From positions 248,001 through 312,000 of the forward strand of contig CAJINV010000014.1 in NCBI GenBank assembly GCA_905178155.1: DNA of 64,000 bases. The letters are read 5' to 3'. Both the position numbers and the translations under genes were made by a program. The notes below the pieces were generated by a model. The model searched no databases, was not told the DNA's origin, and saw nothing but the letters and a program-made list of their open reading frames with translations. The DNA comes from Amoebophrya sp. A120 (taxonomy: Eukaryota; Protista; Dinoflagellata). Positions 1,547-47,300 of the stretch are shown one piece after another. Position 1 is the stretch's first letter; every line of letters begins with the position of its first letter.

Positions 1547-3168
1547 GATACAAGTGCTACTTAACGACAGCAGGAACCACGAAAGGAAGCGAGGACCGCA
1601 ACATCTACGAGGACCATGACCACCTACGAGGAACAAAGACACAAAACAAACGCGAAGATCAAACCAACGGAGGTAAGAAAGAGCAGAAGGCAATCGATTC
1701 TCCCTCGTCGCGAAATGCAATTTTTTAGTAAGTATTTTCCAATAGAAAGAGGTCCTCTATTTTGTATAAATAAATCAAAAGCAGCTTCGGAATGTCGCGC
1801 CTTCGACTTTATTTCTGCCTTTGTTTGATCATAAAATCGCCGGATGTTAAGGCAAGAGCGCAAATCTTCTAGTTGACCTAGGAACGAGACGAGGGCCGAC
1901 AACAAATCAAGCAGATAAGTACACTGGTGCTTTCTCAAAGAAGACTTGCTAAAAGAAAGCAAGGCTAGAAGGACAAGGATCTTCACAAAAAAATAAATGT
2001 TCTTTCTTCGGAGAATTTCATTTTTGATGACATCATACTACACTAGACGTAGAATGATCTGCGGCGAAAATACATACACACAGGATCCACGTAGCGTGCT
2101 TGCTTGCGCTTGGGTACGCCCCGCTCCTTCGAGGGGTTTGTGGGGCTCCATCTAATTTGATCCTGTCCCCGGGAAAGCGATCCGCTCAACGTTGTACGGA
2201 CGAGCAAGAGTGTGAAGCAACCCTCTGAATTCATGATTTGGACGAACAACGCACGAGGTGAACAAGGATCTTCCTGGAGTAGGAGGAGGCAAGCGCAACT
2301 ACAAACCATGGATATTGAATCTTCGTGCAAAATTCTATTCTGCGAAGAATTACGCGATCAATAAATATATGCGGCCAGTGGCTCCTAAGAAGATCTACTC
2401 CTGCTCTTGAGATATTAAAGGCATGCGATTACAAAAGTAGTATCGGTACTAAACAAAAACATTGTACGGCAAGCTCAGCCCCATCGAAAACTCGGCCTGA
2501 GTACGTGCTTGTTTCGTAGTTTACTTTCACTTTATATAACGTGCTCAAAAATTAAATCATAATTATTTTCAAAAATGGTATGCTGCTTCTCAAAATAGCT
2601 ACTGTACTACTGTAGTTTAATCATTATCTAGATCGGTTAATTAGCTAGTAGGGTCGACCCTTGTGGATGTGTGTCATAACGCTAAACCCTCCGAATCCGG
2701 TAGCAGCTGTGGATGTCCGAGCGGGTGGTGGAGCAGGTGGTTGTGAGAGGTCAGCAGTGCCGAAATGTCTGTGCTTGAAACCCTAACACCTGTATTGTTT
2801 GATGGGAATATTTGTGCGTACTCGAAGGTCATTCAAACACAAACGAAATAAGAGATCTGCGTAGCAATACAACAACAAAAGCGAACGTATAAAATGTGTG
2901 AGTTGGAGAAGCGGCAAGTGCGATAGGTCTTGTGTGTTCTGTACATTGAAAAAGATATCAGTGGGATCATCACAATAACTTGAACGCTTTCAATTCTATC
3001 ACGTTGCTGCACCACTACTTCATCATTTGTGGGTTTCGTATTTCCGAGTTCTTGGTTGTCGTCTTGAACGCGAGTAAACTTGTGAATCAATCAAAAACCG
3101 TAGGGAAAAATTTCTGTCTAACACAAACGCTTTTTTACCTCGAGCATCAGCTCCACAAATCCAACAAG

Positions 3169-5046
3169 ATGGCGAAGAAGAAACAGGAGATGTCTGCGAT
3201 GGACTTTGTCCGTCATAAATTGGGAGAGCCCTCTCGTCAGGACATTAAGTTGTTCCGCGAGGCTTTCGACGAGTTGGACGAAGAGCTTGATGCCGATGAG
3301 GAGAACTTCACGCCCATGTACGAATTGTCGAAGCAGGCCTTTCCCGGCACGATTGAGCGCACAGATTTTTATACTTATGAAAACCATGCTTCAGCAATGT
3401 GTTGCTTTTTCTAGATTAACTGCCATGCCATGTCGTGTTGTGTGCATGACTTCTAGCGGTTCCGACGTTTTCATGTAAAAGCATCAACAACTAGTGGAGT
3501 TCTATCTGCAGGCGATCATGTGACGCACTACTTCCCATGTTGAACACGGCTTGTGCGATGTGCACGCTGTTGTATTTGAACCGCAAGAAAAACAAAGCAC
3601 GACATGGCATCACAGAATGAGTATTGCTTTCTCATGCAATGTGAGCCACAACTTGAAAACTGAAACAGGTTGCAATCAAGTCCCCATCGAGATGGCCCAG
3701 ACCTTGCTCGCCACCTTGTGCCACAAGAACGTCATGTGGATCTGCAAGTACGTGTACGACAACCGCCAGTGGGTGTTCTTGTTGGTCAAGTTGAAGATCC
3801 CGCCGGAATTGGTATAGCTACTTGGCTGCATAGACTTGATAGTGGATGCTATTTCGTCATGCAACAATTGTTTTTGTCGTGATATAGTACCAACCTACAC
3901 AACAAACACTCAAATACACATTGCATGACAAATGTATCTTATTCCACAATCAAAATACAAACCAGCCGATCGCGAAAGACAAGTCGTGCAAGTTCCGCAA
4001 CCTGCGTCAGACCTGCAAGAACTTGTCCAAGGCCGCGAGCAAGCTGGAGTTCCAGGTGCTGGCTCAGAACTGCCCCGAGCCGACCAAATGCATCGCCACC
4101 GATGTCGCCAAGAACGTCGGTCTGGCCGAACACCAGGGCTCGAAGACTCCGTCCAGTTTCGCCATGGGCAACATGATGGGTGGCGGCATGATGGGTGGTG
4201 GCATGATGGGTGGCACCCCGATGATGAGCCCGTTCGGAATGACCCCCTTCGGCATGACCCCGTTCGGAATGCAGATGCCCATGTCGGGGATGCAGGGGAT
4301 GCCGGGTTCTGGTGCTGCTGGAGGAGGCCTCACGCAGATGACCCCCGGGCCGAACGGATCTGTAAGTTATAATCATGGCTTGATCATGATATTCGTAGGA
4401 CAAAATGATAGAGCGACGAGTGATGATGCGCTGTTGATGTAGGCTGGTGGGTTTTGTTGTCAATACTTATTTCTAGATTCCAACCCTAACGTTTATTTCA
4501 CACAACACACAGATGTTTTTCGCCCCCCCGGGCATGGCGAATGAGAACAACAACGGTGCCTGCTCCACCAAGGACTTCGTGACCAAGATGGCGCCCCCGA
4601 AGATCCCGGAGCAGACCAAGAAGTCCCCGGCGGCCAGGGCGAAGTCCCCGAAGCCCGCGCCCAAGACCTTGGACTTCGCCGACCCCCAGGACCCGAAGAT
4701 CCGCCTCTCGTACGTGGTGCAGAAGCCGCTGTCTTCGCCGCGGATGACCCCGAAGGACAAGTTCGCCCACCTGCTGTCTACCCTGATGAAGAACTCTGAC
4801 TCGGACGAGACCCAGAACGCGAACGAGGTCGCCTCCGCTGACCGCAAGGCCGCTGCCGCGATCGCCAAGGAGAACAAGAAGATCGACGACGATTTGGCCA
4901 AGGCCGCGAAGGCGGCGGAGAAGGTCAAGAAAGCCGCTGACAAGGAGAAAGAGAAAAAGCAAAAAGCCGCTGACAAGCTCAAGAAGGAGAAGGAGCTGGC
5001 GAAGAAGAGCAACTCCGGCAAGAAGACTGTGATGAAAAAGAAGTGA
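3169..5046 (+). CDS. transposon-borne spliced protein with Gly/Met-rich middle and Lys/Ala-rich basic C-terminus, function unknown
   Basis: Phase-0 GT-AG introns 3812-3965 and 4362-4512 join ORFs 3551, 3921 and 4513 in frame. The link to the exon starting at ATG 3169 is unresolved. Confidence 0.6.
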
Positions 5047-5869
5047 GTGCTTATCTCCGCGTTTGTGATTCAGAAAGTGTTTATTTTCAGTGGCTCCACC
5101 AAGTTACCACATGTAGATCTCGTGCCATCGCGGAACGCGTCTTTGCAGTGTCGAAAAGCAGAGGCGCGTATCTATTTGTATGCGTTGCTTGTGTGAGGTT
5201 GTTTTGTATGCCGCCACCGCAAAGACCGATACGTGATTACACGCAACCTCTTTCCCTTTATACTTCGTGTTATTTTACATCTAGAAATGGTGGGCCACTT
5301 AATGATGAAGCTTCACCAAAAAATATAAATTTATTTGAATTGAATTAAAAATAATTCCATATTTAAACGTCGGTAGTTACTGGTATAGAACTGCCGGCGT
5401 TCTTTGTCAGATTTGCACAGAAAAATAAAGATATATTATAGTATATTACAATACACGAGACTACTTGTAACAACCACCGAGCGTACCTGTTAGTGAGCTG
5501 CCGCGATTCCCTGCGTTTCGTTGGTGGCTTGCGCCAAAATCATGTCGAATTGTGAGGCGAGTGAGCTACTATTTCTCCAGTTGTAGATGGCCAATCTGAA
5601 CAAGCCTCGCGTCGGACTGAAGATGTATTGTGCTTATCTGCTTCTGAATGTGATGTTGAAAAAAAACACGTGGTCGACAGTGAACGATTGCTGCCTGCGA
5701 GCAAGCTGGTATCTGTTTGTTCTGGATGGGATAAAGCGTCGGCTGTTGTGAGTATCGATCGTCGGTTTCGTGAAAAAAGATCGCCACCGAGAGAAGCTAC
5801 TGCTTCGTCGAGTCCAGCAGTAGTTGATGCTGCTTTTTACAACTGCTACTCCGCCAGGACCCACAGCTG

Positions 5870-8800
5870 ATGTCTTCTTCAAAAGAAAACACAGAACTGC
5901 TGAGTCGCTTACACCGAGATGAGATGTTGAAACTTGGGGACGAGATGGCGGAGGCTCCTGTCCCGCAGGGGCTTCCGATGCGGGCGAACAAACCGCGCTT
6001 TAATGGCCAGGAAATTGGCTTCAACGCGATGCCAGCTCTGAGTGGATCTCTCGAGCTGCCGCCAGCACTGGGAAGACCACAAGCCGGCTACGTACCACCA
6101 CCGCTTGTTGTCCAAGATCTCAATACCAGCGAAGATGAGGAAGATCCGTCGTCCTCCGAGGATGAAGTCGCAGTGGACGTTTTCAAGAAGGAGCGGAAGT
6201 CGCGGCAAACGAGGTGGGGCATTCCCATCCGTTCCGAGTTTGATGGGAACCCGCGATGGAAATTGAAATCCATGGCACCCACTCCTGCCGCGTACGCCCA
6301 CTGGCTGGATGTAACCGTTCCGGAGTGGTTGAGCAAGCACTGCAACATCATCTACAAACCTAGGAAGGAAGGAGACCAGTGGGATATCGTACAGAAATAT
6401 GAGTTTTCATTTGAGCGAAGAGCATGCATGAATGCGCATCAGCATGATGAGAAATGTGATAATCTCCTTTACCTTCTTCTATCAGGTGTTCTGCTACTTG
6501 TGGTGGCGCATCTTCTGCGGGCACATTCGCGTCCTGGACAAGTTTGGCAACTGCAACTACCGCGACGAGTTCTTTGCGTTGGATCCAAACAACTTGCACG
6601 CGACGGCCGAAGCAATCCGCAAGAAAGGAGTGGAGCAGCTCGGGAGAATGGGTGCAGATGTGTCGAAGCTAAGAGAACAGGTAGAAATGATTGCAAATCA
6701 TGCCGTCGTGGATAATGTTCTCCACGACGGAGTAGTAGATGTAGATTTAATGCATCACAAGCAGGTCGCGCATAATGTTCCGCTGCATGGTGCCACCTTA
6801 TGCAATTTCGACGTTATTCATACCATCGCGGAGAAGATTATCCACCACGGCATGATAAGCAATCACATTCTAGGCTGCGGCGATGCGGAAGTATATGGAG
6901 CAGGTGATAATGAGCCGCGCCTTTGCCTGCCAGGCAACCGCTGACAAGGAATGCGAGCTTTTGGCCGGATTGTACGGGGACTTGAGGTTCGGCGCGTACG
7001 ATGGACATGCTTGTCTGATCGGCGATGGATCTACCTTGAGGAAGAATGGAGCATGGGGATCGCATGTATTTATACGCTGTTTCAGGTCGTGGATAATGTT
7101 ATACTGCATGGAACTACTAGTGTTTTTTTTTGCATCATCATAGCATCGTGGAGAACATTATACTGCATGAGACTACGCATCATGGAGTCACCAAATAAAA
7201 CATACTATCAGTTTACCTACTATGACGACGTAGACCCCGGTGATCCGCTGCAAGGTCTCCCACCGGGAACCGAGCCCTTCCAAGATACGATACTCCAAGG
7301 GAATGCCTTCCAAGTTGGCGGCATTTCGCAGTTGAAATCAAACGTCGTCGGAACCAAGACGAAGTACATCGGCTGCCTGTGCATGACGATGTGGGTTATG
7401 TGAATGTAAAACACAATACAGCTACGGAAAGACCGTCTTCATATTCCGACAAAAAGCATAACTGTAATGCCAAACTACCTCCTCATCATGACTTTGCTGC
7501 AGCTGTATTGTGTTTTGCATTCATACTCGTGACCCAGTTCGGAGAACAAGCGGTGATAGAGCGGTTTGTCGACATGGAAGCCGACTGGTCCGACATGGAT
7601 ACTACGTGGCTCCAGGGCGACATGAAAAACCACCGGACCGCGATGGAATTCCACACTAAAAGCGACCAGGGTTCGCCCGAAGCCAGGTGGTCGCAAATCC
7701 AGCAGCTGTTCTTGCCGGGCGTCTTCAGTCCGGGCGAGTTGCATCAGCTGAGCAACATCTGCAAAGGCTGCGTGTGGCAGCTGGTCGACCCGAGGGAGCT
7801 TTTCGACGATTGGATCCAGGGCCCGTGCCATCGCGGGCAAAATCAGTCTGATTACTTCTTCGCGAAGACGGAGCTGAAACAGGAAACCAAGGATGATCCG
7901 GACACCGCGAACAAAAGGAAGTACAAGAGCCAGCTGCTGAAGGAGGCCGGAGCAGTCAGCGTTTCGCAGGCTCTGGAGAAGCGTATTACGTGTTTGTAAT
8001 GCTGAGTAGAACAATACTGCTCAACTATTGGGAAAATTCTTGTGTTTTCCTAGGTAAAAAGTACCCGTTTCGGGGGGGGGTCTAGGTACCCCCTCAAAGT
8101 GCGTCACACCATGCAGGCTAGCTTTTGCTTACTGAAAAAAGTGGTCCCGTTTAGGGGGGGGGTCTCGGCCCCCCCTCAGACCCCCTCCTCATAATGCATC
8201 AATTTTCTCTATTCCGCATTACAAGCTGCAATATTTCAGGTTTCAACATCTTCCATGCTTCCCAGAACCGCTTCTTCGGCGACTGGTACTGGACGTCGAT
8301 GATGATGATTTCGTACTGGCAGCTGCTGTTTGTCCTCCACGCGATGGCGCAGAAACAAAAAATAACCGGTCGCAATATGCATTTGAAATGTAACGAAGCA
8401 GCATCATCACATAGGAGGGCCACGTGGTTGCTTTGCTTTGCTCGCTATATACATTTAAGCTTCTTGCGCATGACAGATTAGTGCTGTTTCGTTACATTTC
8501 ATTGGCATAGCCCAAGACTACACGAAGGAAGAAATTACGCGGATTTTGGAGGAGAGTCAGGAGGTGCCGCTGCAGTCCGTGGAAATCGCAGAAAAGCGGT
8601 CAAAACTGCAGAAGAAGTGGCTCGGTTATCATCCCGAAATGCTGCGAGTTCTGGTCGATCTGGAGTGGAAGTGGTTGAAGATCCAGCAGGACGTGGCGCA
8701 GGGGATGTTCAGTTTCTTTCAGCTGCTGTTTCACCTGGAAAAGCACGGTAAGTCGCGGCCGAATGTCGACTCCGCCCCCCTCCTGACTACGTACCAGCGG

Positions 8801-10235
8801 TACATCAGTCCCCAGGTGCAGATGGGAGAGCGGTTGAGTACTGCGAAGATCCAGAAACAGCGGTCTGCAAACCGGGACGGGACGTGGAGAGCCTTGACGG
8901 GGGACTTCTGCAGGGCGTACCATAAAACCGCCGACCACGAAGCTGCAGCGTGGCACTGCATTGCGGGCACGATAAACGCGTGGCATTTCCATACGATGGA
9001 TCCACAATTCGGGCTGTGGGAATCCTACGCCAACAACGTCGTCAATGTCACCCCGGAGCAGGCACACGATGTGGGAGAATACGTCCTGTACGAGCTGTCC
9101 GTTAGCGGCAAAACCAACATCATGGCGATCTCCGCGTTGCCGCAGGCGGATGTGAAGGCGCTGCTGGCGAAGTGGTGTATTCGTGTTGTCCGGAGCATGT
9201 CAATTACCGAATACATCCAAGAAAACCAATTCCGCGAACAAAACCAGCGTCAAGCGAAACGCCAACGCGCCGATAATCATCAATCTCATCAGCAAACAGG
9301 TAGACAAGCATCGCCATGTTTCCGAACAGCCCCGCTTATACGGCCCGATGCGTGTGTTCACACCCACCAAACTGTACATCCTGAATCCCCGGGAAGTGTC
9401 GGAGATTTTGAAGCTTCTGGTGAAGCGGAAGAAACCGCCTCCGACCGCTGCCGACTTGCAGTGCCTTTTCCACGACAACAGCCTGGAGCGTACTGGCGGT
9501 ACGAAGCGCCACGAAAGCATCTCTGCCTGCTACAAGGACATGAAGCTGATGGCGCACACCAACTGGAACAACGAGAAGAATTTCCCGAAGGTCGTGCGGA
9601 AGATGTTGGAGAAGTGCACCGACAAAGAATTTGTCGCGTACCAGCCGAACAAACTCGGGCTTCGTGGTGTCGAGGCGGAGGTCATCATGCGCAACAAGTT
9701 CCACTCGAAGATGGAGTACAAAGCGCACAAGACCATGAGCTACAGGTTTGGTGAAGATCGTAACTACGGCGCCAAGTTCCAGGAGTCGAAGAATCTCGTG
9801 GTGATCGGCCACAAGCGGGGCGAGAAGGAAGAGGAAACAACCCACTACAGGTTCTCCAACTGGATGGAAGGACTGCTGATGGGACTCGAGCTGTCGCGGT
9901 GTGGAAAGAAACTTTTCCGGCTGCCGATCCGCGATTCCGAAATCAAGAAGTGTGGGTTTTTAGCCAGCGAGCTGGTCCTCTACGAAGGTGTCGTCAACCG
10001 CCGCTCCACCAGCAAAAACGAACCCACCTACATCCACACTCCGTCCAACTGCTGGGCCGATCCGATTGATTATCTCCCACAGCTCTTGCCGTCGATTTCG
10101 GACGAAATGCAGGCTGCTGTGCTGTCCAAAGTCCAAGACACTTTTCCAGCGATTACAGACGAGCACCTCGGCTTGCTCTCCATCGAAAACAAAGCCACGC
10201 TGTTTGAAGTGCTCCTTGCCAGTATGGAAATCTAG
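5870..10235 (+). CDS. candidate divergent DDE transposase (hAT-like), ~1,091 aa, 8 exons
   Basis: Exons 5870-6388, 6486-6680, 6874-7065, 7212-7394, 7538-7982, 8240-8368, 8511-9187 and 9300-10235 are joined by phase-compatible GT-AG introns. Motif order LIGDGST, KSDQGS, GPCH, SQNRF, TKRHESIS resembles the hAT D, D, CxxH, TRW and E motifs (by eye). Confidence 0.55.
8053..8190. repeat. two imperfect tandem copies of a G-run/C-run hairpin-like unit inside a predicted transposase intron
   Basis: aaaaagtacccgtttcgggggggggtctaggtaccccctca and aaaaaagtggtcccgtttagggggggggtctcggcccccccctca. Confidence 0.6.
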
Positions 10236-10394
10236 TTTTCATATCTGCAGCTCTAGGGACGTTTTGGTTTTTTGTTTTGCATTTCGTGGCTGTAGCTTCT
10301 GCGTGACAAATTTCGTGCTGTCAAGAAACAGCAAAGCAAACTGCTAGTAGCTACGCAGATATGACGTTTTTTCATATTGATACGCCACGTCGCA

Positions 10395-11195
10395 ATGGAC
10401 CAGGAGTTTTGCGACTGCATCATCTCGGTGACGTCGTCGTACGAGGATACCCCCATGACCGGAGCCGGGCTTCTGCAACCACAACCGAAGAAGAAGGTCG
10501 CACGGGTTTTGAAAAAACAAGAACTGATCCCCGTGCCGAAGTCCGTCAGTAGTCCCATGCGGCCGGGGCTGAAGCGGCTGCCGGCAAAGTACCGGCATAA
10601 AGTCGTCTCCATCGTCACGGACCCTTGGAGGGATTTAGCTACGTTCGCCAGTCACCGGATGGACCAGGGTGATGCGAGTGATCGTCTGCGAATCCGGTGG
10701 GCGAATGATCGCGTTCCGGAGTATGTCAAATTCGCTCCTTCTACTAAAGCTACCGGGTCCGTCCAGCACAATGTCCTGCGCGAGTTATTACCAGCAGTAA
10801 TCGCCGAGTTTTCCTTAGAGCCCGAGGAGTTCTACATCATGCGCGTGGACGAGGGGGCCGGTCACCTGCGTAATAGTCCGATCCCAGTGCCAGAAGCAGT
10901 ATTTGACCTCGCAAAAGAGTCTGGCATCATGAACAAGAAGAAAGCAGCTGAACCACAAGAAGAAAGACAGGTCGAAATGCTGCAGGTGAACGCACAGAGC
11001 CTGATGATGCTGGACGAAGGGGAGTCGTTGGAAGATGGTTTTTTTCTCCAGGAGGATATGATGGATGCTGATGAGGATGAGAAGCCGACAGCTGACAGCA
11101 AAGGTAATAAGCGTCCCCAGAATCTCCTCAATCAGACCACCAACAACAACTCCTCTGCCGCCTCGTCTAGTAATGCGAAACAGCAGAAACGGTGA
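10395..11195 (+). CDS. transposon-borne hypothetical protein
   Basis: Open frame of ~266 aa from ATG with coding-like composition; no recognised domain. Confidence 0.55.
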   Translation: MDQEFCDCIISVTSSYEDTPMTGAGLLQPQPKKKVARVLKKQELIPVPKSVSSPMRPGLKRLPAKYRHKVVSIVTDPWRDLATFASHRMDQGDASDRLRIRWANDRVPEYVKFAPSTKATGSVQHNVLRELLPAVIAEFSLEPEEFYIMRVDEGAGHLRNSPIPVPEAVFDLAKESGIMNKKKAAEPQEERQVEMLQVNAQSLMMLDEGESLEDGFFLQEDMMDADEDEKPTADSKGNKRPQNLLNQTTNNNSSAASSSNAKQQKR

Positions 11196-11477
11196 AACTA
11201 ACATACATCAATTTTAAAGTTCAAAAAAATAGAAGGCTACAGCTGATGGATTCTTTATTTTTAGAAAGATAAACCTTAGTCGTATTCTTCGCATCGAGAC
11301 TGAGAAAGTCCCGCAAGCTAAAACTCTTGCTACGGCAATTCAAAAACTATTTGTGATGTCTTATTGGCACTTTTACAGCACCGCGAAAGAGTATCACAGA
11401 CAAAAATTATTACTTGTTGCATTTGAATTATTTTAGAGCGAGCGAGTATATACCTGAGCAACAATTTCACCTACTAC

Positions 11478-11624
11478 TGCGAAATTATATCAAGCGGAAA
11501 CGAGAGAAGCTGACTCTGTTGTTATGCATCATATTTGTATCTTGTGTGGTACGTGCAGTATGTGGCTAATGCATGCAGGCCAGGAGGCAGCTGTTCTCTC
11601 GTTTCCGCTTCATATAACTTCCGC
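11478..11624. repeat. inverted repeat / small MITE-like hairpin between convergent element genes
   Basis: tatatcaagcggaaacgagagaa versus ttctctcgtttccgcttcatata. Confidence 0.7.
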
Positions 11625-11931
11625 AGCATTGCATCACGACAACGTAGAAAAGACCACTACTTCAAAATATGTTTTATATCTGATTAGATGAGGACTATAT
11701 TTGTAATGCAGTTTTACGATGATACATTTTGTACACGAGGTTCTTCGAAGCGAAAAAAATAATTTTAAAACACAACACTGGAACTCCCAACACAACAATG
11801 CCCCTCTTGTACATTTTTACTTCTTTATATCAAAACTACAAAACTGCATTGCGGCTGTGGCGGAGTGCGTCCCAGCGATGTTCCAATTCAAAAACTGCGT
11901 CCGTCGTCTTCGTCTATTGTTTTTCTTCTAT

Positions 11932-13303
11932 TTACTGTTCTGTCTGGGTCGAAGATGAAGACGAAGCTTGAGAGTCCGAGCTGTTCTGGTTCAGAAGCTT
12001 CAGCATCTCGTTGGCAATGTTCATTTCCGTTCCTGCTTTGATGTAGTATTTTTCCAAGGTTCCGCTCAACCGTGGTCGCTTTACACCAGGTGCATTCGGA
12101 AACAGATCCAGGGTTTTTTTTCCGGACCTAAAGTGTGCGCTTTCGTTTCTATAAATTTACTTCATGAAGATGCTAGTTGTAATGTCCTAATTGCATCACA
12201 TCAAAAACAAATATGCTTCTCTCATGTCGTTACTGATTGTCGTCTGCCACGTGTCCAGTCTGCCGCAGAACTTCAAACGGCACCAAGGCGCATCCGTGCA
12301 ACGATTTGCACTGTTTGGGCTTCGGAATGTCGCGGCAGTGGAGAAGCAAAAACTCGGCGTCGTCGTGCTTATAGGTTTTGCCGCCCGACCTGTCGTGTTT
12401 GCAGATTGGCAATTTGGCTTTTTCGCATGCAGCGAGCATCAGGTTGGCAAAACTATCGTCACGAATGGTAGCAACGTAACTATACCGCTTCAGCGAGCAG
12501 CGGAGGCTCAACTGTTCGCCACGTCCGGTCCGCGGGTACATCAGCTTCTCTTGCACCAGGTGCCGAAGGTCGGGATTCGTCCGATCATACAAGACGCCAT
12601 CAGCTACACCAAATTCCTTCGGCGGCGGAGCATAGATGAGGTTCGAGCCTCGAATTTCATCGAGGAACAAATCACGGGCGGACTTTTCCATCAGTGTCTG
12701 CTGACTGTATGCGCACAGGATGGCACTAGTGCCCGTGTGATGGGTAACGAAGGGCCCCTTCCACAACTGCTTCAACTTTTGCGGTGCCTGGTCGCTGGAA
12801 ACGATGCCGGAATTGATGTTGAACTTCTCGTAGTCCTTGACCCTATGAACTGCTTCGATAAATAGTTTTGTCGTGTCCAATACATCGACTCCGATCAGGA
12901 TGCTTCCATGTAGCCGCTCTTGTTCATTATTTAAAATGAAACGCAGCCGACGGTCAAAAGCATCATCCCAGCACTCGGTGGACTTGAGTTGCACCGACAT
13001 GAAATATTCATCGTCCAGGTTGTCAACCGTCGGTGCACGGGTTACCGGGCGAATAAATAAATCGCTTGCACTTTCAAAAACGGCGTGCACTTCGAAAGTA
13101 TTGCTGAGCACTGCAGTGAACTCGCGCACAGAGGCCTTCTCGATTTCTTTCGGTTGTGTTCCCATTGTCTCGCGCAAAGCCACCACCTCGCTCCAATCGC
13201 TGCAATGAGTACGATGCTGAGAAAGTAACGCAATACAACTGCTCGCGAGGGGTCTTAAATCACGTCGGGGACTCTGACGCTTTTTTGTATTTGAAACCAT
13301 CAC
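11932..13303 (-). CDS. tandem PD-(D/E)XK-like nuclease (two D...QxK modules)
   Basis: Motifs SASDLFIRP...MSVQLKST and GVADGVL...LVQEKL. GT-AG intron 12128-12233 extends ORF 12230-13303 in frame (DNQ-SGKKTLDLFP) to a stop at 11932. Confidence 0.65.
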
Positions 13304-13686
13304 AGTCCAATCATAAATGCAACCAGCCAGTTCCTCGCAAATGCATCAACCCGAAATAATCTTTCCTCTCCATAGACCGACTTCGTGACATTGTTTTTTT
13401 GGTGTATCAAATCAATTCATAACCGACCAGCTGCAGGACCTACAGGAGAAGTAGCATCGCATACAGACTTAGCAACAGCACATGCAATTTCATGACAAAA
13501 AATGGCCTTCTTCCCAGCATCGTCATGCAGTCGCTCCCGCGTTACGACACACATCCACAAGGGTCGATCCTACTAGCTAATTAACTAGCTATAGCATGCA
13601 TATTAACATACCTATTTTAATGTTAAATCGATAAGCAGCATACCGTTTTTGAAAATAAATAAGATTTAATTTTTGAGCACGTTATA

Positions 13687-16538
13687 CTTTATTAACCTCT
13701 TGGCTAAAGCCTCGCCCAAAACCCGTGAGCCTGCTTCGTTCAAATGCACGTGATCGAGAGCATGGAGTTGCATTGAAGAAGAGCTGCCGACGCCGGGTGG
13801 AGCTGCGTGGTTGTTTCGCCGCTTGCCTTATGAATTGCAAATATGTCTCGGTCTGGAGCAAGATTCTGAGACTTGTCACGCACGTTTTGCACGAGCCATC
13901 ATGTCCTCTGTGATGCATGCCCTAGCATCACAGATTTTTTGAGGGCTTCTTGATGCCTATTCCGCCCTCCCCGCGTAGCAAAAATAGCATTCCCTTTGCT
14001 GCTCATGCAATACAGATTTTTTTTGGAATCCAAATGCAGCATCACAAGTTCATCCACTTTTCCGGACCGCCCAAACACATTTGCATTTTATATGCCTAGC
14101 ACTTTGCGTCGACTGATTTCCCGTATTTTCACAACAACACAACCTTCGTCCAGCATGGAATCTTCTGTGTCATGATCCGCGCTAGCACTTCTACCAGCAG
14201 CTGCAAGACCAGAAGCGTGGCCACGAGGTGCCGCTACTAAATTCAATCCCCGGAGAAAGTCGCTGCGCTCTGTCCCTGCTTTGGCTCGGAAAAGCGTCAC
14301 CATTCGCGCCCAGTGGTCCTCTGACAAAATTGTTGCTAGGTCAATGTCAACGCTTTTGTTTTTGTTCGCATCCTTGGAGAAAGCACGGCGTAGGACCGAT
14401 TTGAAGAAGGGTCCCTCGGGTGGTCCGAGCGCGAGTGCGAGTAGGTGGATCGTGATCCTTGCGTTCTTGCCCCCTGCAGCGGGGACGAGCTCTCGGCTAT
14501 GATTCTGTATCTGTTCTACTTCCGCAAGCTGCTGACCCATGATCTGTGCTACGCTCGGAGCTCCTCGACCTTGGCCGTTCGTCTTCCGCTCGCCGAGTTC
14601 TTCTTGTGGCTCCTCGCTAGTACAGCTACAGGCTTGACCCGTCAAAAACTTCAGGTATTTCCGCAAGTGTCTTTGCATCAATTCTCTATAAAGCTCTTCC
14701 AACTTTTCCGGCCAGGTCAATGACGTTTGCAAGATTTTGCGCTTCAAAGCGTCCTGCTGGTCAGCAGCTCCAGCACGACTCTGTTCCTCGTCCAGTTCGG
14801 GGAAATGCCTGCTGATGAACGTTTTCAAGATGTCAGGATACACCAATTCGCTCCAACCGAGGTGCAAGACGATAGCGTCGCCCCTTTGTATATTTTGGCG
14901 CACAGCAACGTCGTTTTTCACTTTCGACGTGAGCTTTCTGGTAGAGCTGGAAGCTGCGTCCTGAGATGTATCACCAGCCCTGGCAGCTGCAGACAAAAAG
15001 CCCGCCGCTGAGCTGCTCCGACTTTGGTGAACTGATGTGCCTCCTTCCATAAAATAAATTCGGTCTTGTAAAGAACTCCCGGCCTCCGCTGCCATCACGA
15101 CCTGCTTCGTGCCCACTTTCGCAGCCGATGGAAGCGTCAGAACTGAAATCGACAAAGAAAGTTGCAAAAAATGCATAAAATATTGCCATGCTTTTGCTCA
15201 TACACGAACTGCCTGCATAGCAAGACACGTGAATGAGAGCGATTGCAAGCCTCTTCGGGATCGGGGCTCTTGGAGATAGAGCTGCTAAAAGTAGTACGAC
15301 AGACGGCGTCTTCTTTCCCCGCGAAACAGCCTGGCTCATTGGATTTCGGTGCTTCCAAAATTTGCCATGCGTCGCTTAGAAAGTAAAATTGGCAGCCTAA
15401 GAGACTGGTGGCGCGGCTTGGTCTTGGAATAATTTTGTGCATTACAACATGTTTCACTTTTGTGAATTTTAAACCTGGCACTACTTCCATACAGTGTCGC
15501 CTCGACCGGGTGCAGATCTAGTGGGAACCTCGTCGTCCAGCAGGAAGAAGTTGATCCAGTACGTATCCACAGTAAATTTCCCATACGTGTACAAATGCGA
15601 TCTCTGCATGACAAAACTCAGCTTCCATACTGGTTTAGCTTTAGCATGACAAGTGCTGCACTTAAATAAATTGACGAAATTTGATGTGACGGTGCATGAT
15701 TTTGCACCAGATGTATCATCAATGGGTAAATTTGTATTGCATCTGCATAGTACGCAATATCAGGCAGCTGGTACTCCATGAACAGGCCATAGGTCTCTCC
15801 GAGCGCCGTGGTCGTGCTTTGTTTCATCGATGACGATGGCCCTCGTACTTGTATACTTGATGCACTTGCACTTGCAGCACTGCTTCTATAATAATCACTT
15901 CGTCCTAGATACCCACTATTGTCGAGAAACCCATCCCCCACCAGGAAAATCAGCGCATCGACGCGGAACCTCTCGCCGCCGATACCTTTCCCATGCCGCA
16001 AATTTTTCGCGATCTGGCTGACGAGAGTGCCACTGTGCCGGTTTTCGGCTCCATGCGTGCTGTCGGCATAGTACCTGTCGGCATCGATTTGCGTTAGGGG
16101 GACAGTCAGTCGCGCATGAGCTGCGGCATTCGTAGTTCCGCTGCTGCCACCAGGAGCAAGGACCGTGGTTCCTCCGCTGGGAGTTCTTGCACTCGTTGTT
16201 GAGCTTTCCTCATCGTTCTTGATCTGCAAAACGAGTCCCACAATTTGGCACACTACCCCCACCACCCAACAGATGATGAGGAAGATAGTCAGAAATTGGC
16301 AGCAGCAGTCTTTCACCTTCTGTGTGTCAACATCGTCATTCTTGGCGCCGCAGCACGTCCTGCTGTACTTTTGCGGTGCTGGTCTTCGGTGATCATCTTC
16401 TTTATCCTCAGTTGCAGCTCGGTCGTTTTTGTTTTTCTTCTTGGGCTGCTTCTTCTTCTTGTAATCCATCCTTTGCTGGGATGTGGATGAATCTTCCGCC
16501 TCTTCGGCTGTGCCGGGTATGATCCGGCTCCTGTGCAA
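13687..16538 (-). CDS. membrane-anchored SGNH/GDSL-fold protein; its native stop codon is displaced to 2527-2529 by the transposon
   Basis: TM helix FLTIFLIICWVVGVVCQIVGLVL; block I FLVGDG; block III DAIVLHLGWS; block V DHVHLNEAGSRVLGEAL after removing introners. The 15177-15490 junction is unresolved. Confidence 0.7.
13829..14092. mobile_element. introner, ~262-bp GTCTGGGTCTGG family
   Basis: TSD TGCCT; TAT...ATA ends; frame restored. Confidence 0.88.
15564..15749. mobile_element. introner, TATCCACAGTAAATTTCC family
   Basis: TSD GTACG; frame restored (PDIAY-WINFFL). Confidence 0.88.
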
Positions 16539-41348: not shown

Positions 41349-44300
41349 TCATACCTGCAGGGTGAAAGGGAAAATGAACTTCCCGTTTTTCAGGGTGTGT
41401 TTAATCAGCTGCTGGAATATCTCGGCGAGGCCCTGCTCAACCCCCACCTCGTAGAACCACTTGCGCGTCTGCTTCATGCTTATTCCATTCGAAAACACGA
41501 AGGCTTTGTGAAAGCAGTCGAACTCATCGGTCGGCGTGGTGAAACCGTAGATTTGCTCGCATCATGTGGAAAAAGACTACAACGCGCATTGTGTCGTGTA
41601 CTTAAAAAGACGCCGCAAACTTGTCCTGTAGTTGGCGGACTTAGAAATTTGCACTGCAGCTACGTAAGGGAAAATGTTCCACCGGCCCCAGTTTTCCACA
41701 AATTGAAAAAAAAAAAATTCGCTCCGTCTCCTCCGGTGGTGGCTGACGTTGTGCGCCACCTTGGTCCACTTTCCCAAGTTCCTCGTGGCCGCGCATCCGG
41801 ATTCAATGGCATGCAATGCAAAATCTGAACTAGCTAGCGGCGCACAATAGTAACTAGATTAAGACTAACACTTTGAAAATGCGTTTAGGTTTGTCCTATT
41901 TTCTAAGACAATTCTCTGTAGCCCGGCAGGATGAACCGTCATGGAGGTCAGCAAGGCGGACGCTCCGAGCAGCGGCCAGCGGCGTAGACGTTGTAGTGCG
42001 GATATCTCGCCCCGAAGCGCAGCAGGTATTCTTCGCCGAGGTTCTGGACGGGCCTCTGTGGGACCTTGTGCGGCAAGATCTCCGCATCCGGATCTGGTGG
42101 CGGTCGGGAGGCAGCTAGCAAGCAAGAACAAACGAAGAAACAGCGACGACTGGCGCCATGGCCTTCCTTCTCCGGCCAATGCGCGGCCACTTCGTTGCAT
42201 GTCAGCAGCAGCTACTTACACCCCAAAGCCCAAAAATCAGCAGAATGGAGCGGCAGGAAGATCGTAGTGGGCACGATAGCAAACCAGGGCCCTGCAATAG
42301 CGATCACGATCTCGCAGCCTTCAGGAAATAGAATCGCCTCGCTTGAAATCACAGAGCGACAGGTCTCCGGCAATAGTAGCTACAAAAACCCGGAACGCGG
42401 TCCGCCAAAGTGAGGCCCTTTTGGCCGGGGCCGATACAAGGCTCAACACCAACCACAGCACGAGCTGCAACACCAACAGGCCAGAGGCGTCAAATGTTGC
42501 GCATTTACAAGAAGCACCTTCAGGCCGTGCCAGGTGCCCCCCTGGGAATCACCAAAGAAGCCACCGGCCTGCTAGAAGATAGTCTCCTTGGAAGCACTGC
42601 TTTGCACTTGTCTAGGTTCGTAGCAGCATGAAACTTCTTGCACGCCATATAAAACGGGGGCGCGGCCGCGACAAATTGAGGCGGAGAGACGGAAGCAATT
42701 CGCGCACATTTTGGGCCCGGGGATCAGCGTTCTGGCGTCCCTGAAGCAGGTCGGGGCCCCCTTCTCTTTTGCCCCGGCCGGCTCGTCGTTCGAGTTGGCG
42801 ACGACCTTCCGAAGACCGCCGATCGCGCTGTAGCTGGCTGGTGGGATGAAATTGGGCTCAGCGGCCCATCGGGATCGTCATCCTGAGCAAGCCCGGCCGC
42901 ATCCTGTTGCGCAGCCTGCCCTCCTGGTTGCGCCACCTGCTGCCGCTGCGTGTCGTTCCCGTCGACGCCGATTGCGTCCCCGATGCGAGTCGAACCCACA
43001 ATGGCCTTCGCTATGATTGCCAAACACAGCGCCCGGCTTTTTTTCTGCCACCTTATTGCGCGGCAGCCACCCCATCGCCCAGCCTCCGCGCCGCCGCACA
43101 AGATGGGGGCGGCTGTGTGCGGGCGCATGAAAATGAAGAGGAGTATGACTGCGGCGCGAAAATGCGACAGGGCGGCGGGCGTAGGGGGCGCAGACCCCGG
43201 CCGGCCCGGGCCGGGCGGGGGGCGCAACAATCTGCCGCGCCAGGGTAGCCAGAAGCCGGCGCGCGGCATTTCGGCGCCGGAGGGGCCGGCGCCGAAGGTG
43301 CCCAAAGCGAAAAACCGAGAGGAGCCGGAGGGCCCCCGCCTCGCCAGCCTCACCCGGGGGTCTCGCGATTTTTTTCGTTTCTTGTGGACGTTTTGGAATA
43401 AGGACCTGAGTCGGTCGATTTTGTGGCCATTTTGGACGCCCCGAACCGGGTCGAATTTGCCCAATTTCCTCGTGAGTGTCCAGGGGAGGTCTCCGGGGTC
43501 GCCGGCGACCAACGTTGCCAAGAACTTGAGGCCCCGCCGAGTCGTTTTCTGCGCGCCTTTCGCACGACTTCGGTGCCCGCGTGGTCAGGCAAAGGCCACT
43601 GGGGTCTCGGGCAAGGCGCCCAAAAAAAGGCGCCCGGGGTGGTGGGCCGGCGAAATCATGTGGCGCGGGGCTGCCTGAGGGTTTTGTGTTTTCTATGGTG
43701 CCTAGGTCCAGCGTGGCAATTTTGGAAAAGTGGGGCGCGTGCCTGTCTTGAGTGCGTCTTTTAAGTCTTGCCACCCTCCCTCCCGCGTTATGTCCTGGCG
43801 CCTGTGTGGGAGAATTCCCACCCTTTATACTGCGCAAAAGTGTCTGCCGCTGGGGAGCTCTTTTTAGGCATGTCATGCACAGTCTGCATTGCGGAAAAAT
43901 CTGCCATGCATGTCTTTCGGAGAGGCACATCCCCCGGAGAGCACAAAGTCGGCCCATCTGGGGCGGTAGCGCGGTACCGGGGTGGCACAGGGATTCTCGT
44001 CGGGCGGGGGGCCCTCGGGGGTGGGGTCATTCGGCGTCAGGTGTGGCCAATTTTCTAGCAACAGACACTGTTGCCGTCCTCTTCTCGAGTCGCTTCCCGA
44101 CTCTTTTGCGCGCGTTTTTCCAGTACTGGTAGGTCACCCCATTGCTGAAGTCCCCCTTTCGCATTTTTCTCGCGGCGGCGTGTAGCGTCGTATGCTGTGC
44201 AAAGGTGCTGCGCAGATAAGGCGGCCTGGTTAACGCTCTGCGGCTCAGGAGCCAGCTCTGTGCTACAGCGTGCGTTCTCCTATGGCTGGCCCACCGTGCG

Positions 44301-47300
44301 GAGTCGCTCCCTATACCTGTGCAGCATCTTTGCAAAGCATAGCGCGACACCTTCGAGCTCTTTCTGCAGCGGCTGTTGCTGCGCTGCATCCGCACGAGCT
44401 GCGGAAACGCCCGCGCGATTCCGGTCACCTCCAGAGTGTGTTTCCATTCGGAACTGTTCTGGCCCGTCAGGCCGACACAAATTCAGCGGCCACTCTTTGG
44501 GCCACAGAGTGGCGCACCCGGGGAGGCCTCGCAAGAGATCTTGTCCTGCAGTCCGAGGACATAGGTCCCAAATATGCCCAAGCAGGACAGGGGCTTTTTC
44601 TTTGTTGGTTCTAGGTGCGTCCTGTTGCCTGTTGCCACCGTGAGGAGCATGCTACGAATCGAGCAACACAGGCACTAGTGGTTTGGGCCTTTCAAGTTCA
44701 TCGCCGTCATTGGGTGCAGGGAGATCTACAATTATGGCGACAGTGCTGAGATACTTATCTACCCACAACCAACGGCGAGCCATTGGCAGCAGATCTGCGA
44801 GCATGTTTGCTGTTTCGAGACGCGGCATCGAAACGACCTCGCGACGACGTACTGCAGCAGACGAAGCCGGCAGCCTCCATCCCGCCGGAAAACCTGGGAG
44901 CCGAAACCGGAAGGGTGGAGTGGATCCGGGGCCGGAGGTGCTACGGTGTCGTAGCTCTAAAGCCTTAAAGTTAGCGCATCTATTGTGCGCCACTAGCTAG
45001 TTCAGATTTTGTCTTCCATAAAACAACTCCGAGGCCGCGGAATGGGGGTCGGCCTGGGTTGCCGGAACCGAATGCCGCCCAGCGAGTCCCCTGCTATGCG
45101 ATGCATATGCTAAAAAAAATTTTGCATTTTGTGGAAAACTGGGGCCGGTGGAAAATTTTCCCTAACGTAGCAGCCCATAATAGCGACATTCTATCATCAA
45201 GATGACGAGATCAACATGTTGACAGAAAATTTCGTGCCATGCCTGCTTTCTATCTTGCAGGAAAGGAAATCAGCCTAGGCCTGCGCGGCTAGTCTTTTTC
45301 CAGATCTGATAGCTTGTATCGTTTGTGCACAAAGATAGCGTCGTGGTATTCGAAAAGTACCTTAAAGTGGGTTTTGTATAGAGTCTGTATGACCTCCATC
45401 AAAAAGGTCAGCTCTGTGCTGTGTGGCCGCATTTGATGCAAAAGAAAACTACCCTCTTGACCTGTTTCTTGTCCTGTTACCACGGCTGCAACAACCACGT
45501 ACTGATCTTAGAACGAACAAAAATACTCTTACCAGCTCGTAGTCCCATTTCTTCATGAAGTTCACTGCGTAACTCAGGCTCATGCCCCGGAGCTATCCTG
45601 TGTAAAATCCTTGTCAACATCTCCACCGCTTTCGAACCAAGATTACACGCATGTACGCTATAGAAATCTTATCTACACGACCACAAAAATGCGGTATAGC
45701 AAAAATGCGGTATAGCAAAAATGCGGTTAGTTCTTGAAGAACTTGACACGATTACGACAAGAAGTGAGATAAGATTTTACATCAGGCGTAGTACTGGCCA
45801 GTGTTCCATGCTGGCATTCAGCATCGCGGGCCACAATTTGGGATGGTACAGTGTCGCGTACTGGTAGGGCGGCGGTATCTATAGAATGCAAAAGTATGTC
45901 TGGGTCTGGGACGAGATTCGGATTGCAACGGTTGTAATGCTCTGCTGATAGGACCAGGACAAAAAAATGTGTCATGCATAATGCACTACCACGCTGTAGT
46001 TTTGTTGTGATGCAAAAACGCAGAAGTTTCTCATGCACTTTAATACGCAAAATCCATTCACTCGAAAACTTGTCATGCGAGGACCCAGATATCTTTGCAT
46101 GTAATGCATAGTATCGTGGGATTGATCTCCAGGAAGAAAAATTTCGCGGTGAAATGATTTTCCAGTAAGGCCGTCAACACCGTGCTGTCGTAACTGTCAA
46201 TATCTAATTTTATCAAATCAAAGTGCCGCTGCTGGTTGGCGATCTCGGAGTTTTCCAAGATCAGGTCCACGATGTTCATGGAGGTTATGCAATGTTGCAA
46301 AAGCATTGTACTACGTGTGGAAATTGCATCACAAACTTTTTATATGAAGAAGAAACAAGAAATCGCCATGCAGATTCAGGTAGGAGGGCCTAGATGATTT
46401 GTTATGCAAGTGATTGCGACCACTACGATTCATTACAGCACGAATAGCACGATAATTTTGCACAGGATAGGGGTGACTTCCGCGCAAATCACGCTTTGCG
46501 CCGCGGGGAGGTTCTTCTTGAAATTCTTTCGGGCAATTCTGCACTCCTTTTCGTCCTTTTCAAAGTGAATCCCCTTCGCGGCGAAGGACTTGGCAAAGTC
46601 CACGCAGGGACTATCCTATGTAAAAACGTCCCCGTCCCATAGCTGTAGTGCAAATCTGCATGCTAAAAATATTTCTCACGCGGGTCCCCATCTAGAGAAG
46701 CGCTTATTTCTAGTCGTGTTTCGTAATTTGCAATGCTCCAACTAGCACGACGCGCTTGATCTGTGATGCTGCTGAACTAGCCAAACAGGACTACACACAC
46801 GAGGCCAGACTTGTCTTGCGCAACAGCCAAAGCTTGTTGACTTGTCTAGCAGAATTCCCATCTTGACTAGGGGTGGGGGCGTTTTTACACAGGATAGGGA
46901 TCCTCCACCATGCCGTCCTTTGCGCCAATGTTCAAAAACGTTTTTGTCAAGCCGAACCCGCTTTCTTCCAGCAGATACGCGTGAGGGAGGAAGGACGACA
47001 CATTCAGCTGGAGCGTCTCGTTGGTCGCCGCACGGGTGAACGACTGCGAATTGATGTTGCAATCGCTCGTGCCCACCAGAAATCGCTGCCGGTTCCGCCG
47101 CAGCGTCGTCATCGGGATGTTGACGCTGCCTTCGTTGGTCAACGCTAGGTGGTGCTGGACGGCGTCCACCAGGTCGTCGCCCATGGCGCCGTCTTTCAGG
47201 TTGTTTCACTATGCATTGTAATTCTGTCTGGGTATTTAAAAGCGGAACTTCTCATGCGTGCTGCGCCTTCCTACACGGCCTCCTGTGTTGCATAACCAGG

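Follow-up and report, generated by a model that had tools for sequence, protein, structure and literature searches.

A candidate undescribed transposon family of Amoebophrya sp. A120 that shares its terminal trinucleotide and duplication length with introners

Introner elements of Amoebophrya have inverted repeats at their ends, direct repeats of 3–5 nt over their boundaries, and a hairpin that joins the two ends (PMC7789003). For strain A120, Farhat et al. (2021) reported no transposase and argued against transposase-mediated mobilization of introners (PMC7789003). Gozashti et al. (2025) described in A120 ‘family 38’, an introner with terminal inverted repeats (TIRs) and an integrase-like open reading frame (ORF), which they proposed to be an intron-generating transposon of an unclassified kind, and left most A120 introner families unclassified (PMC12130899). 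Here, we analyze a 64,000-nt stretch of the Amoebophrya sp. A120 genome (contig CAJINV010000014.1, positions 248,001–312,000; hereafter, the window) that contains, at its positions 2535–13686, an insertion of 11,152 bp with TAT...ATA termini. On balance, we favor the view that this insertion, present in a single copy, belongs to an undescribed family of TIR DNA transposons that has been found so far only in Amoebophrya and that carries genes for a large protein with a hAT-like DDE core and for a PD-(D/E)XK nuclease, along with a small accessory gene. The family is protein-coding and has the target-site duplication (TSD) length and the terminal trinucleotide of the dominant introners of A120. 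For transposon classification, it would be unusual to find a hAT-like core together with a 5-bp duplication and a restriction-type partner nuclease.

The closest known architecture to that of the large protein is found in hAT transposons (Hermes), whose TIRs are short (about 10–25 bp) with YARNG-type termini. Tn7 has long ends with internal binding sites and a 5-bp TSD, and its TnsA works together with the DDE protein TnsB. Transib and RAG1 possess a DDE core that contains an insertion domain. A TSD of 5 bp has been called distinctive of Transib (PMC1131882).

The 11-kb element and its relatives

A preliminary description had read the insertion as a multi-gene transposon with intact TIRs and a 5-bp TSD. 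A direct reading of the flanks bears out the termini and the duplication, with CTTTA followed by TATAACG on the left and CGTTATA followed by CTTTA on the right. The TIRs are intact in part: each arm has two blocks that match the other arm in an inverted-repeat search (outer, 2535–2591 and 13630–13686, 57 nt, 93 per cent; inner, 2636–2682 and 13539–13585, 47 nt, 96 per cent), but the ~45-nt spacer between the two blocks has no match between the arms.

The transposon reading itself is upheld by colinear relatives with TIRs of their own and 5-bp TSDs. In the 115.5-Mb assembly (contigs G000:Cn; the window is G000:C14:248001–312000), paralogs of two ORFs of the element lie side by side at several loci, with their convergent order kept. 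Within the 20 kb examined around each of five such loci, the element is colinear with four over nearly its whole length, at 40–55 per cent amino-acid identity (tblastx). Both ends were mapped for the copies designated C1a, C1b, and C22 (Table 1), whereas in the C3 copy the right TIR alone is still recognizable. An inner TIR block with one mismatch and in left-end orientation lies 26 kb upstream of the right end of the C3 copy (G000:C3:10738305), so this copy may have been expanded by nested insertions rather than truncated. Genome-wide, a profile search found at least 13 loci of the large gene, most of which adjoin a copy of the minus-strand gene. Thirteen aligned termini share a TATRRC end, TATTTTCAAAAAT at ~31–43, a TAGCTAG-type block, and the inner block CGGATGYGTSTCGTAACG at ~131–150. 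The inner-block pattern has 19 matches in the genome (7 in the control), and its exact matches are all at ends of known copies (8/8). No published description of the 11-kb family was found in the literature.

The TIR of C1a recurs at three further loci and that of C22 at one, each time as a miniature inverted-repeat transposable element (MITE) of 280–284 bp that consists of two TIR arms placed head to head and is 97–98 per cent identical to the parent arm (90 per cent in the oldest). The TIRs of the window element and of C1b have no derivatives in the genome. A perfect 5-bp TSD flanks seven of the eight family insertions (the window element, C1a, C1b, C22, and the four MITEs, among which that on C15 has a degraded TSD). 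Because the relatives have TSDs of exactly 5 bp, each beside a TAT terminus, the 5-bp TSD is a property of the family, and the alternative reading of the window flanks as a 7-bp repeat (ACTTTAT) is rejected. The preliminary description had preferred 5 bp and had proposed the TSDs of relatives as a check; they are 5 bp throughout the readable cases, and no 7- or 8-bp TSDs were found. In every family MITE, the breakpoint is located inside the inner block, in the form CGG(A/C)TG(C/T)GT, 1–4 nt, and the reverse complement, and this common position suggests one recurrent route of formation, for example, by hairpin or foldback deletion.

These 280-bp MITEs have exactly the form of the described introner elements (PMC7789003), and one of them, on C3, is located in an ORF. 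Removal of the C3 MITE together with one TSD copy restores an open frame of 759 codons (261 to the left and 498 to the right). The host gene has paralogs, and in one of them, a 64 per cent identical gene on C10, nothing but the single split codon separates the two sides. When the MITE is present, the frame meets a stop after one further codon, and the added length (289 nt, MITE and one TSD copy) is not divisible by three. The RNA of the MITE folds into one hairpin that pairs both ends (−129.9 kcal/mol, z −16.8). The C3 MITE is thus either a candidate introner or a fresh knock-out. The C10 paralog (G000:C10:3354627–3359063), our empty-site control, has a frame-changing interruption of its own (~276 nt, around positions 2931–3207 of this locus), 17 codons downstream of the MITE site. 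A word-based homolog search with the C3 host ORF gave no matches.

Candidate transposase and partner nuclease

Comparison with the relatives (tblastx) delimits three conserved coding units in the element (Table 1); the preliminary description was right that several genes are present, but these units replace its four predicted genes. Frame changes from exon to exon of the large gene are found at matching positions in paralogs of only 40–55 per cent identity and therefore mark real introns. Full-length homologs account for every window exon between 6194 and 10964 (tblastn), so that this is a single gene. A HMMER search with an uninterrupted stretch of 583 amino acids from C1a gave 15 matches among 1.84 billion representatives (21–28 per cent identity; 398–1,537 amino acids). 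The ten that were traced to their source are all from Amoebophrya (A25, AT5.2, and the Ameob2 transcriptome), and the presence of a homolog in the transcriptome means that the gene is expressed in Ameob2 Amoebophrya.

The minus-strand gene, which is convergent to the large gene, encodes a tandem nuclease. Across 12 aligned paralog pieces, residues E69, E91, D95, and Q119-x-K121 are nearly invariant, and residues 65–200 are modeled in an alpha-beta-beta-beta-alpha-beta layout with predicted local distance difference test (pLDDT) values of 80–93. The top 17 VIA fold matches of the nuclease are all PD-(D/E)XK enzymes, RecU and restriction enzymes among them, and Foldseek matched it to Hjc with a probability of 0.97. 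With the core layout, an acidic residue in helix 1, a D at the start of strand 2, and QxK in strand 3, the model firmly assigns the first domain to the PD-(D/E)XK fold; the second domain, with E220, E244, D249, and QEK, appears from its motifs only to be of the same type. A word-based homolog search with the nuclease gave no matches.

For the large protein, an AlphaFold2 model of a homolog of 1,133 amino acids (27-row alignment) has a mean pLDDT of 70.8 and a predicted template modeling score (pTM) of 0.70. Its top structural match among 48,161 representatives is Hermes, over ~350 residues and in three entries (PDB 6DWW, 8EDG, and 2BW3). The alignment and the model place a conserved D of ...TxD(Y/F)STxRK at the end of a strand. 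A second conserved D, in DQGSxE, stands directly behind a strand, with HRxSN ~26 residues on, and a conserved E, in PxxExxxExQF, lies within a helix after ~380 mostly helical residues. This D, D, E order and spacing are hAT-like, and a motif scan showed that the window copy retains every conserved motif of the region. Language-model neighbors of residues 60–640 are hAT clusters (DUF659, hAT dimerisation, and ZBED1 RNase-like) and P-element RNase-H clusters, with scores of only ~0.8. These results point, less firmly than for the nuclease, to a putative Hermes/hAT-like architecture in the N-terminal ~630 residues of this multi-exon protein of ~1,300 amino acids, in which a large helical domain would interrupt a DDE RNase-H-type core. 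A conserved C-terminal part of ~500 residues, which includes a beta domain and the motif SHR...G...R..W, is without any match. We regard the large protein as the best transposase candidate of the family; it is plausibly a DDE transposase that has escaped the standard domain libraries.

The accessory region is colinear with C1b, C3, and C1a at 40–69 per cent amino-acid identity (tblastx) and is partly of low complexity (Gly/Met-rich and Lys/Ala-rich). A Pfam scan (E ≤ 0.01) of ~35 ORFs and exons from the window, the relatives, and seven full-length homologs, in which the spliced transposase was searched exon by exon, returned nothing significant; the best match was DUF4365 in a nuclease copy (E 0.036). 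Introns of the element's own genes (6688–6865, 7401–7523, 7994–8224, 8376–8509, and 3420–3615) each lie between inverted repeats of 17–43 nt and, having such repeats at both ends, are by their sequence introner-type introns. Those inside the transposase gene do not have TAT ends or a 5-bp flanking repeat.

Table 1. Features of the window element, its relatives, and the 3.5-kb element. Locations without a contig are window positions.
Feature	Location	Strand	Details	Basis
Left TSD copy	2530–2534		CTTTA	direct reading of sequence
Right TSD copy	13687–13691		CTTTA	direct reading of sequence
Left TIR	2535–2682	+	~148 bp, bipartite; conserved blocks: terminal TATAAC, TATTTTCAAAAAT at ~31–43, TTAGCTAG at 2641–2648, GTGGATGTGTGTCATAACG at 2663–2681	inverted-repeat search, 13-terminus alignment, inner-block pattern matches
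Right TIR	13539–13686	−	~148 bp; conserved blocks as in left TIR	
Accessory gene or genes	3175–5043	+	exon-like blocks 3175–3360, 3662–3814, 3963–4160, 4732–5043	
Large multi-exon candidate DDE transposase gene	6149–10970	+	exons (approximate): 6149–6451, 6477–6689, 6772–7125, 7194–7406, 7502–8002, 8215–8388, 8495–10214 (frameshifted), 10395–10970	tblastx, tblastn of full-length homologs, motif scan, fold matches
Candidate catalytic codons		+	D 7024–7026, D 7664–7666, E 9221–9223 (E motif 9209–9223)	motif scan
4-nt insertion, +1 frameshift in transposase frame	9279–9282	+	~12 codons past ...QENQFRE...	
C-terminal SHR motif	10650	+		
Tandem PD-(D/E)XK nuclease gene	11938–13165	−	conserved part 13165–12236 and last exon 12129–11938; main ORF within 12233–13345	
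Copy C1b	C1, 13.08 Mb		12,064 bp; TIR 148 bp, 99 per cent; terminus TATGGC; TSD AGTCC	
Copy C1a	C1, 1.455 Mb		~11.76 kb; TIR ~150 bp, 77 per cent; terminus TATAAC; TSD ATGCT	
Copy C22	C22, 0.66 Mb		11,739 bp; TIR ~150 bp, 77 per cent; terminus TATAAC; TSD GTTCA	
MITE on C16	C16:974314–974593		parent C1a; TSD AGTAT; center 974444–974463	
MITE on C5	C5:2767980–2768259		parent C1a; TSD TTCTA; center 2768110–2768129	
MITE on C15	C15, ~426883–427167		parent C1a; TSD degraded; center 427013–427032	
MITE on C3	C3:10485361–10485644		parent C22; TSD CTACG; center 10485493–10485512	
Further MITE center	C1:370214–370232			
3.5-kb element, repeat pairs	41656–41710 / 45120–45174; 41811–41850 / 44980–45019			

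Affinities of the family and state of the window copy

Several observations weigh against the reading that we favor or against that of the preliminary description. The large protein has no match in Pfam, among PDB sequences (single or profile), or in Foldseek searches of PDB and BFVD, and the strands between its first two candidate catalytic residues are modeled at low confidence. The TSD of hAT elements is 8 bp, whereas that of the family is 5 bp in seven of eight insertions, and the bipartite family TIRs of ~150 bp with TATRRC ends are unlike those of hAT. Neither the DNA of the window element nor its TIR has a further copy in the genome, the TIR being found only at the element's own two ends. 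Three public RNA runs have no reads on the window stretch and hence are uninformative about expression and splicing. On the side of the introners, those of the window are without the TATTTTCAAAAAT, TAGCTAG, and CGGATGYGT blocks of the family in a pattern scan; family MITEs are rare (a search for their palindromic centers found five elements genome-wide and none in the control); and the C3 MITE is young (97 per cent), so its intact ORF is no proof of splicing. Finally, it is unlikely that the window copy is autonomous, because its transposase gene has a 4-nt frameshift, which is also seen in a public contig.

This frameshift is due to four extra bases between ...KRQRADN and LISKQVD..., a region that in C1a, C1b, and C22 is continuous in one frame. 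It follows the candidate catalytic E by ~12 codons and would remove the conserved C-terminal half. A small intron was considered as the cause of the frame switch at ~9281 and rejected, since the homology is continuous and just 4 nt are extra. The 12.8-kb contig from a public DNA run covers 8000–13889 with zero differences; it is possibly the assembly's own source, which limits its independence. Given the frameshift and the lack of derivatives, the most likely state of the window copy is that it is inactive or relies on a sister copy. The earlier proposal of this copy as a candidate autonomous element is therefore not sustained: its transposase frame is broken, and no derivatives or further copies with its TIRs were found in the genome.

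We do not file the family as hAT, because it lacks three defining features of hAT: a TSD of 8 bp, a dimerisation domain, and short TIRs. The hAT dimerisation domain (PF05699), the BED domain, and the hAT RNase-H domain have no Pfam match in the family proteins, and the family goes beyond hAT in its conserved C-terminal extension of ~500 residues, its partner nuclease gene, and its length of 11–12 kb. Transib agrees with the family in its 5-bp TSD and differs from it in having CAC-heptamer termini and a length of 3–4 kb, as compared with TATRRC termini, 11–12 kb, and extra genes, and no Transib or RAG1 chain is among the top 50 of the 48,161 structural representatives for the large protein. The family and Tn7 are alike in parts only, namely, in a DDE candidate, a PD-(D/E)XK nuclease, and a 5-bp TSD: TnsA is not among the fold matches listed, no TnsB, Mu, or rve match was found in Pfam, genes like TnsC, TnsD, or TnsE are absent, and the family is eukaryotic and intron-bearing.

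Relation to the introners

Among inverted-repeat pairs 50–800 bp apart in the whole window, TAT-started pairs with an exact 5-bp flanking repeat number 12/53, whereas every other trinucleotide or TSD length in the same scan gives 0–2. Eight more TAT elements have TSDs that match at four of five positions. The preliminary description had put the small intron elements with this signature at ~40; the signature is real and specific, but strict criteria support ~20. Inverted-repeat ends with direct repeats of 3–5 nt, as described for introner elements (PMC7789003), are present in the 11-kb element, in the family MITEs, and in ~20 small window elements. Because no other trinucleotide or TSD length is enriched, the TAT and 5-bp signature common to the 11-kb family and the window introners is specific.

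The likeness ends there, as a caveat of the preliminary description had anticipated for the TIR beyond its first 3 nt: only TAT and the TSD length are common. BLAST found no similarity between the window introners and the 11-kb element. Extra likeness of 3–4 nt beyond TAT between family ends and introners (TATGGCG, TATGAC, and TATGAG) was rejected as being within chance for ~170 comparisons. Introner copies near the relatives are located outside the three copies with mapped ends, and the window element contains none. The link between the 11-kb family and the window introners is therefore one of superfamily at most, and mobilization of the introners by the 11-kb family is unsupported. With unique TIRs, introners that lack the family blocks, few MITEs, and a 3.5-kb element that has no protein or DNA similarity to the 11-kb element, the earlier claim that this family supplies the introner transposase in a three-tier system is not shown. 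We regard the 11-kb family as a new transposon family whose superfamily is at present the best candidate for the introner enzyme, not as a demonstrated driver; a transposase of the same superfamily probably serves the abundant TAT/5-bp introners, though not demonstrably that of the 11-kb family. We also entertain, tentatively and with considerable doubt, a broader proposal: that an Amoebophrya-restricted superfamily, with a hAT-like DDE protein, a 5-bp cut, a partner nuclease, and TAT-ended TIRs, is the enzyme source of the whole TAT...ATA/5-bp introner population, recognizing TAT plus a hairpin-forming inverted repeat instead of family-specific sequence. If this were true, non-canonical intron gain in Syndiniales would be directly testable with a defined protein.

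In the mechanism that we propose for the family, the transposase would bind the subterminal blocks, excise the 11–12-kb element by cut-and-paste, and reinsert it at a 5-bp staggered cut, and the nuclease may process ends or flanks. Deletion derivatives of two TIR arms (~280 bp) would fold as one long hairpin, and MITEs inserted into exons would resemble in shape the introner elements published for Amoebophrya. The protein and the DNA substrates with which the origin of non-canonical introns can be tested are now concrete.

There is a real chance, if a somewhat smaller one than for our favored reading of the element, that the shared signature is a superfamily or chance likeness and that the introners are moved by another enzyme, such as that of the integrase-related ‘family 38’ or of an extinct lineage, with the 11-kb family as a minor bystander that has left a few MITEs. 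A bystander role would agree with the layout that the window introners share in place of the family blocks, with the five family MITE centers in the whole genome, with at least 30 rve integrase matches in the genome, and with the duplications of 4–6 bp that integrases typically make. A TIR-flanked, integrase-like introner family is moreover present in A120 (PMC12130899). It is opposed by the pairing of a 5-bp TSD with the same terminal trinucleotide, which is specific and the sole enriched combination in the window, and by the diversity of the transposase lineages, at least 13 of them, with ends read for just ~9. Like the 11-kb family, ‘family 38’ is protein-coding and TIR-flanked and is found in the same genome; by its description it is set apart by homology to Copia/Gypsy integrases, for which the 11-kb family has no match.

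Other alternatives concern the element itself. We consider it quite unlikely that the large protein is not a transposase, so that the PD-(D/E)XK nuclease would make the staggered cuts and host repair would follow, or that it is a DNA-binding or regulatory partner, given that three Hermes entries lead its structural matches, over ~350 residues, and that the D, D, E motifs are conserved across strains. Among known cut-and-paste elements, none is known to rely for strand transfer on a PD-(D/E)XK enzyme by itself. It is extremely improbable that the 11-kb element is itself an 11-kb intron (an introner) of its host gene. Its site in a host coding region, immediately ahead of the stop codon in a minus-strand ORF ending in ...DHVHLNEAGSRVLGEALAKRLIK, and its inverted-plus-direct-repeat shape, as in Amoebophrya introners, would suit an intron. 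However, read-through into the element adds just six codons (YNVLKN) and then a stop to the host frame, so splicing of the 11 kb is not needed, and the published introner analyses took introns of 40–1000 bp (PMC7789003). The element also differs from introner elements in being protein-coding and in its position at the 3' end of a coding sequence.

Another insertion in the window, a 3.5-kb element at 41661–45169, had been proposed as the middle tier between the 11-kb element and the introners. Its ends are TAC...GTA and its TSD is of 5 bp (GCAGC); the inner block of its bipartite TIR contains CTAGCTAG, an octamer confined within the window to these two arms (2 found, 0.29 expected). It shares with the 11-kb family the bipartite TIR layout, a TAGCTAG-type block, and the 5-bp TSD, but no protein or DNA similarity to that family was found, and the element is at most a distant relative through its TIR layout. 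Its ORF of 359 amino acids (42878–43957, minus strand) has no Pfam match and no relative by word-based search.

Some 19 small TAT/5-bp elements, located between 929 and 63510 (e.g. 49245–49506 and 50665–50926), carry in each arm TATSNNNTGYAAAA, then a block rich in G and C (GTCTGGGTCTGG is an example), and then TTGTCATGCA-like words at ~35–55 nt; these words may be a splicing or binding signal. The rve integrase matches are at no fewer than 30 places in the genome, many of them in very long ORFs (C2:7406297, 4,886 amino acids; C4:8269074, 3,639 amino acids), and integrase-bearing elements are accordingly common in A120. The host ORF beside the 11-kb element (13687–14400, minus strand) contains DxxH in its C-terminus and, judged by its motifs, looks like an SGNH/GDSL hydrolase.

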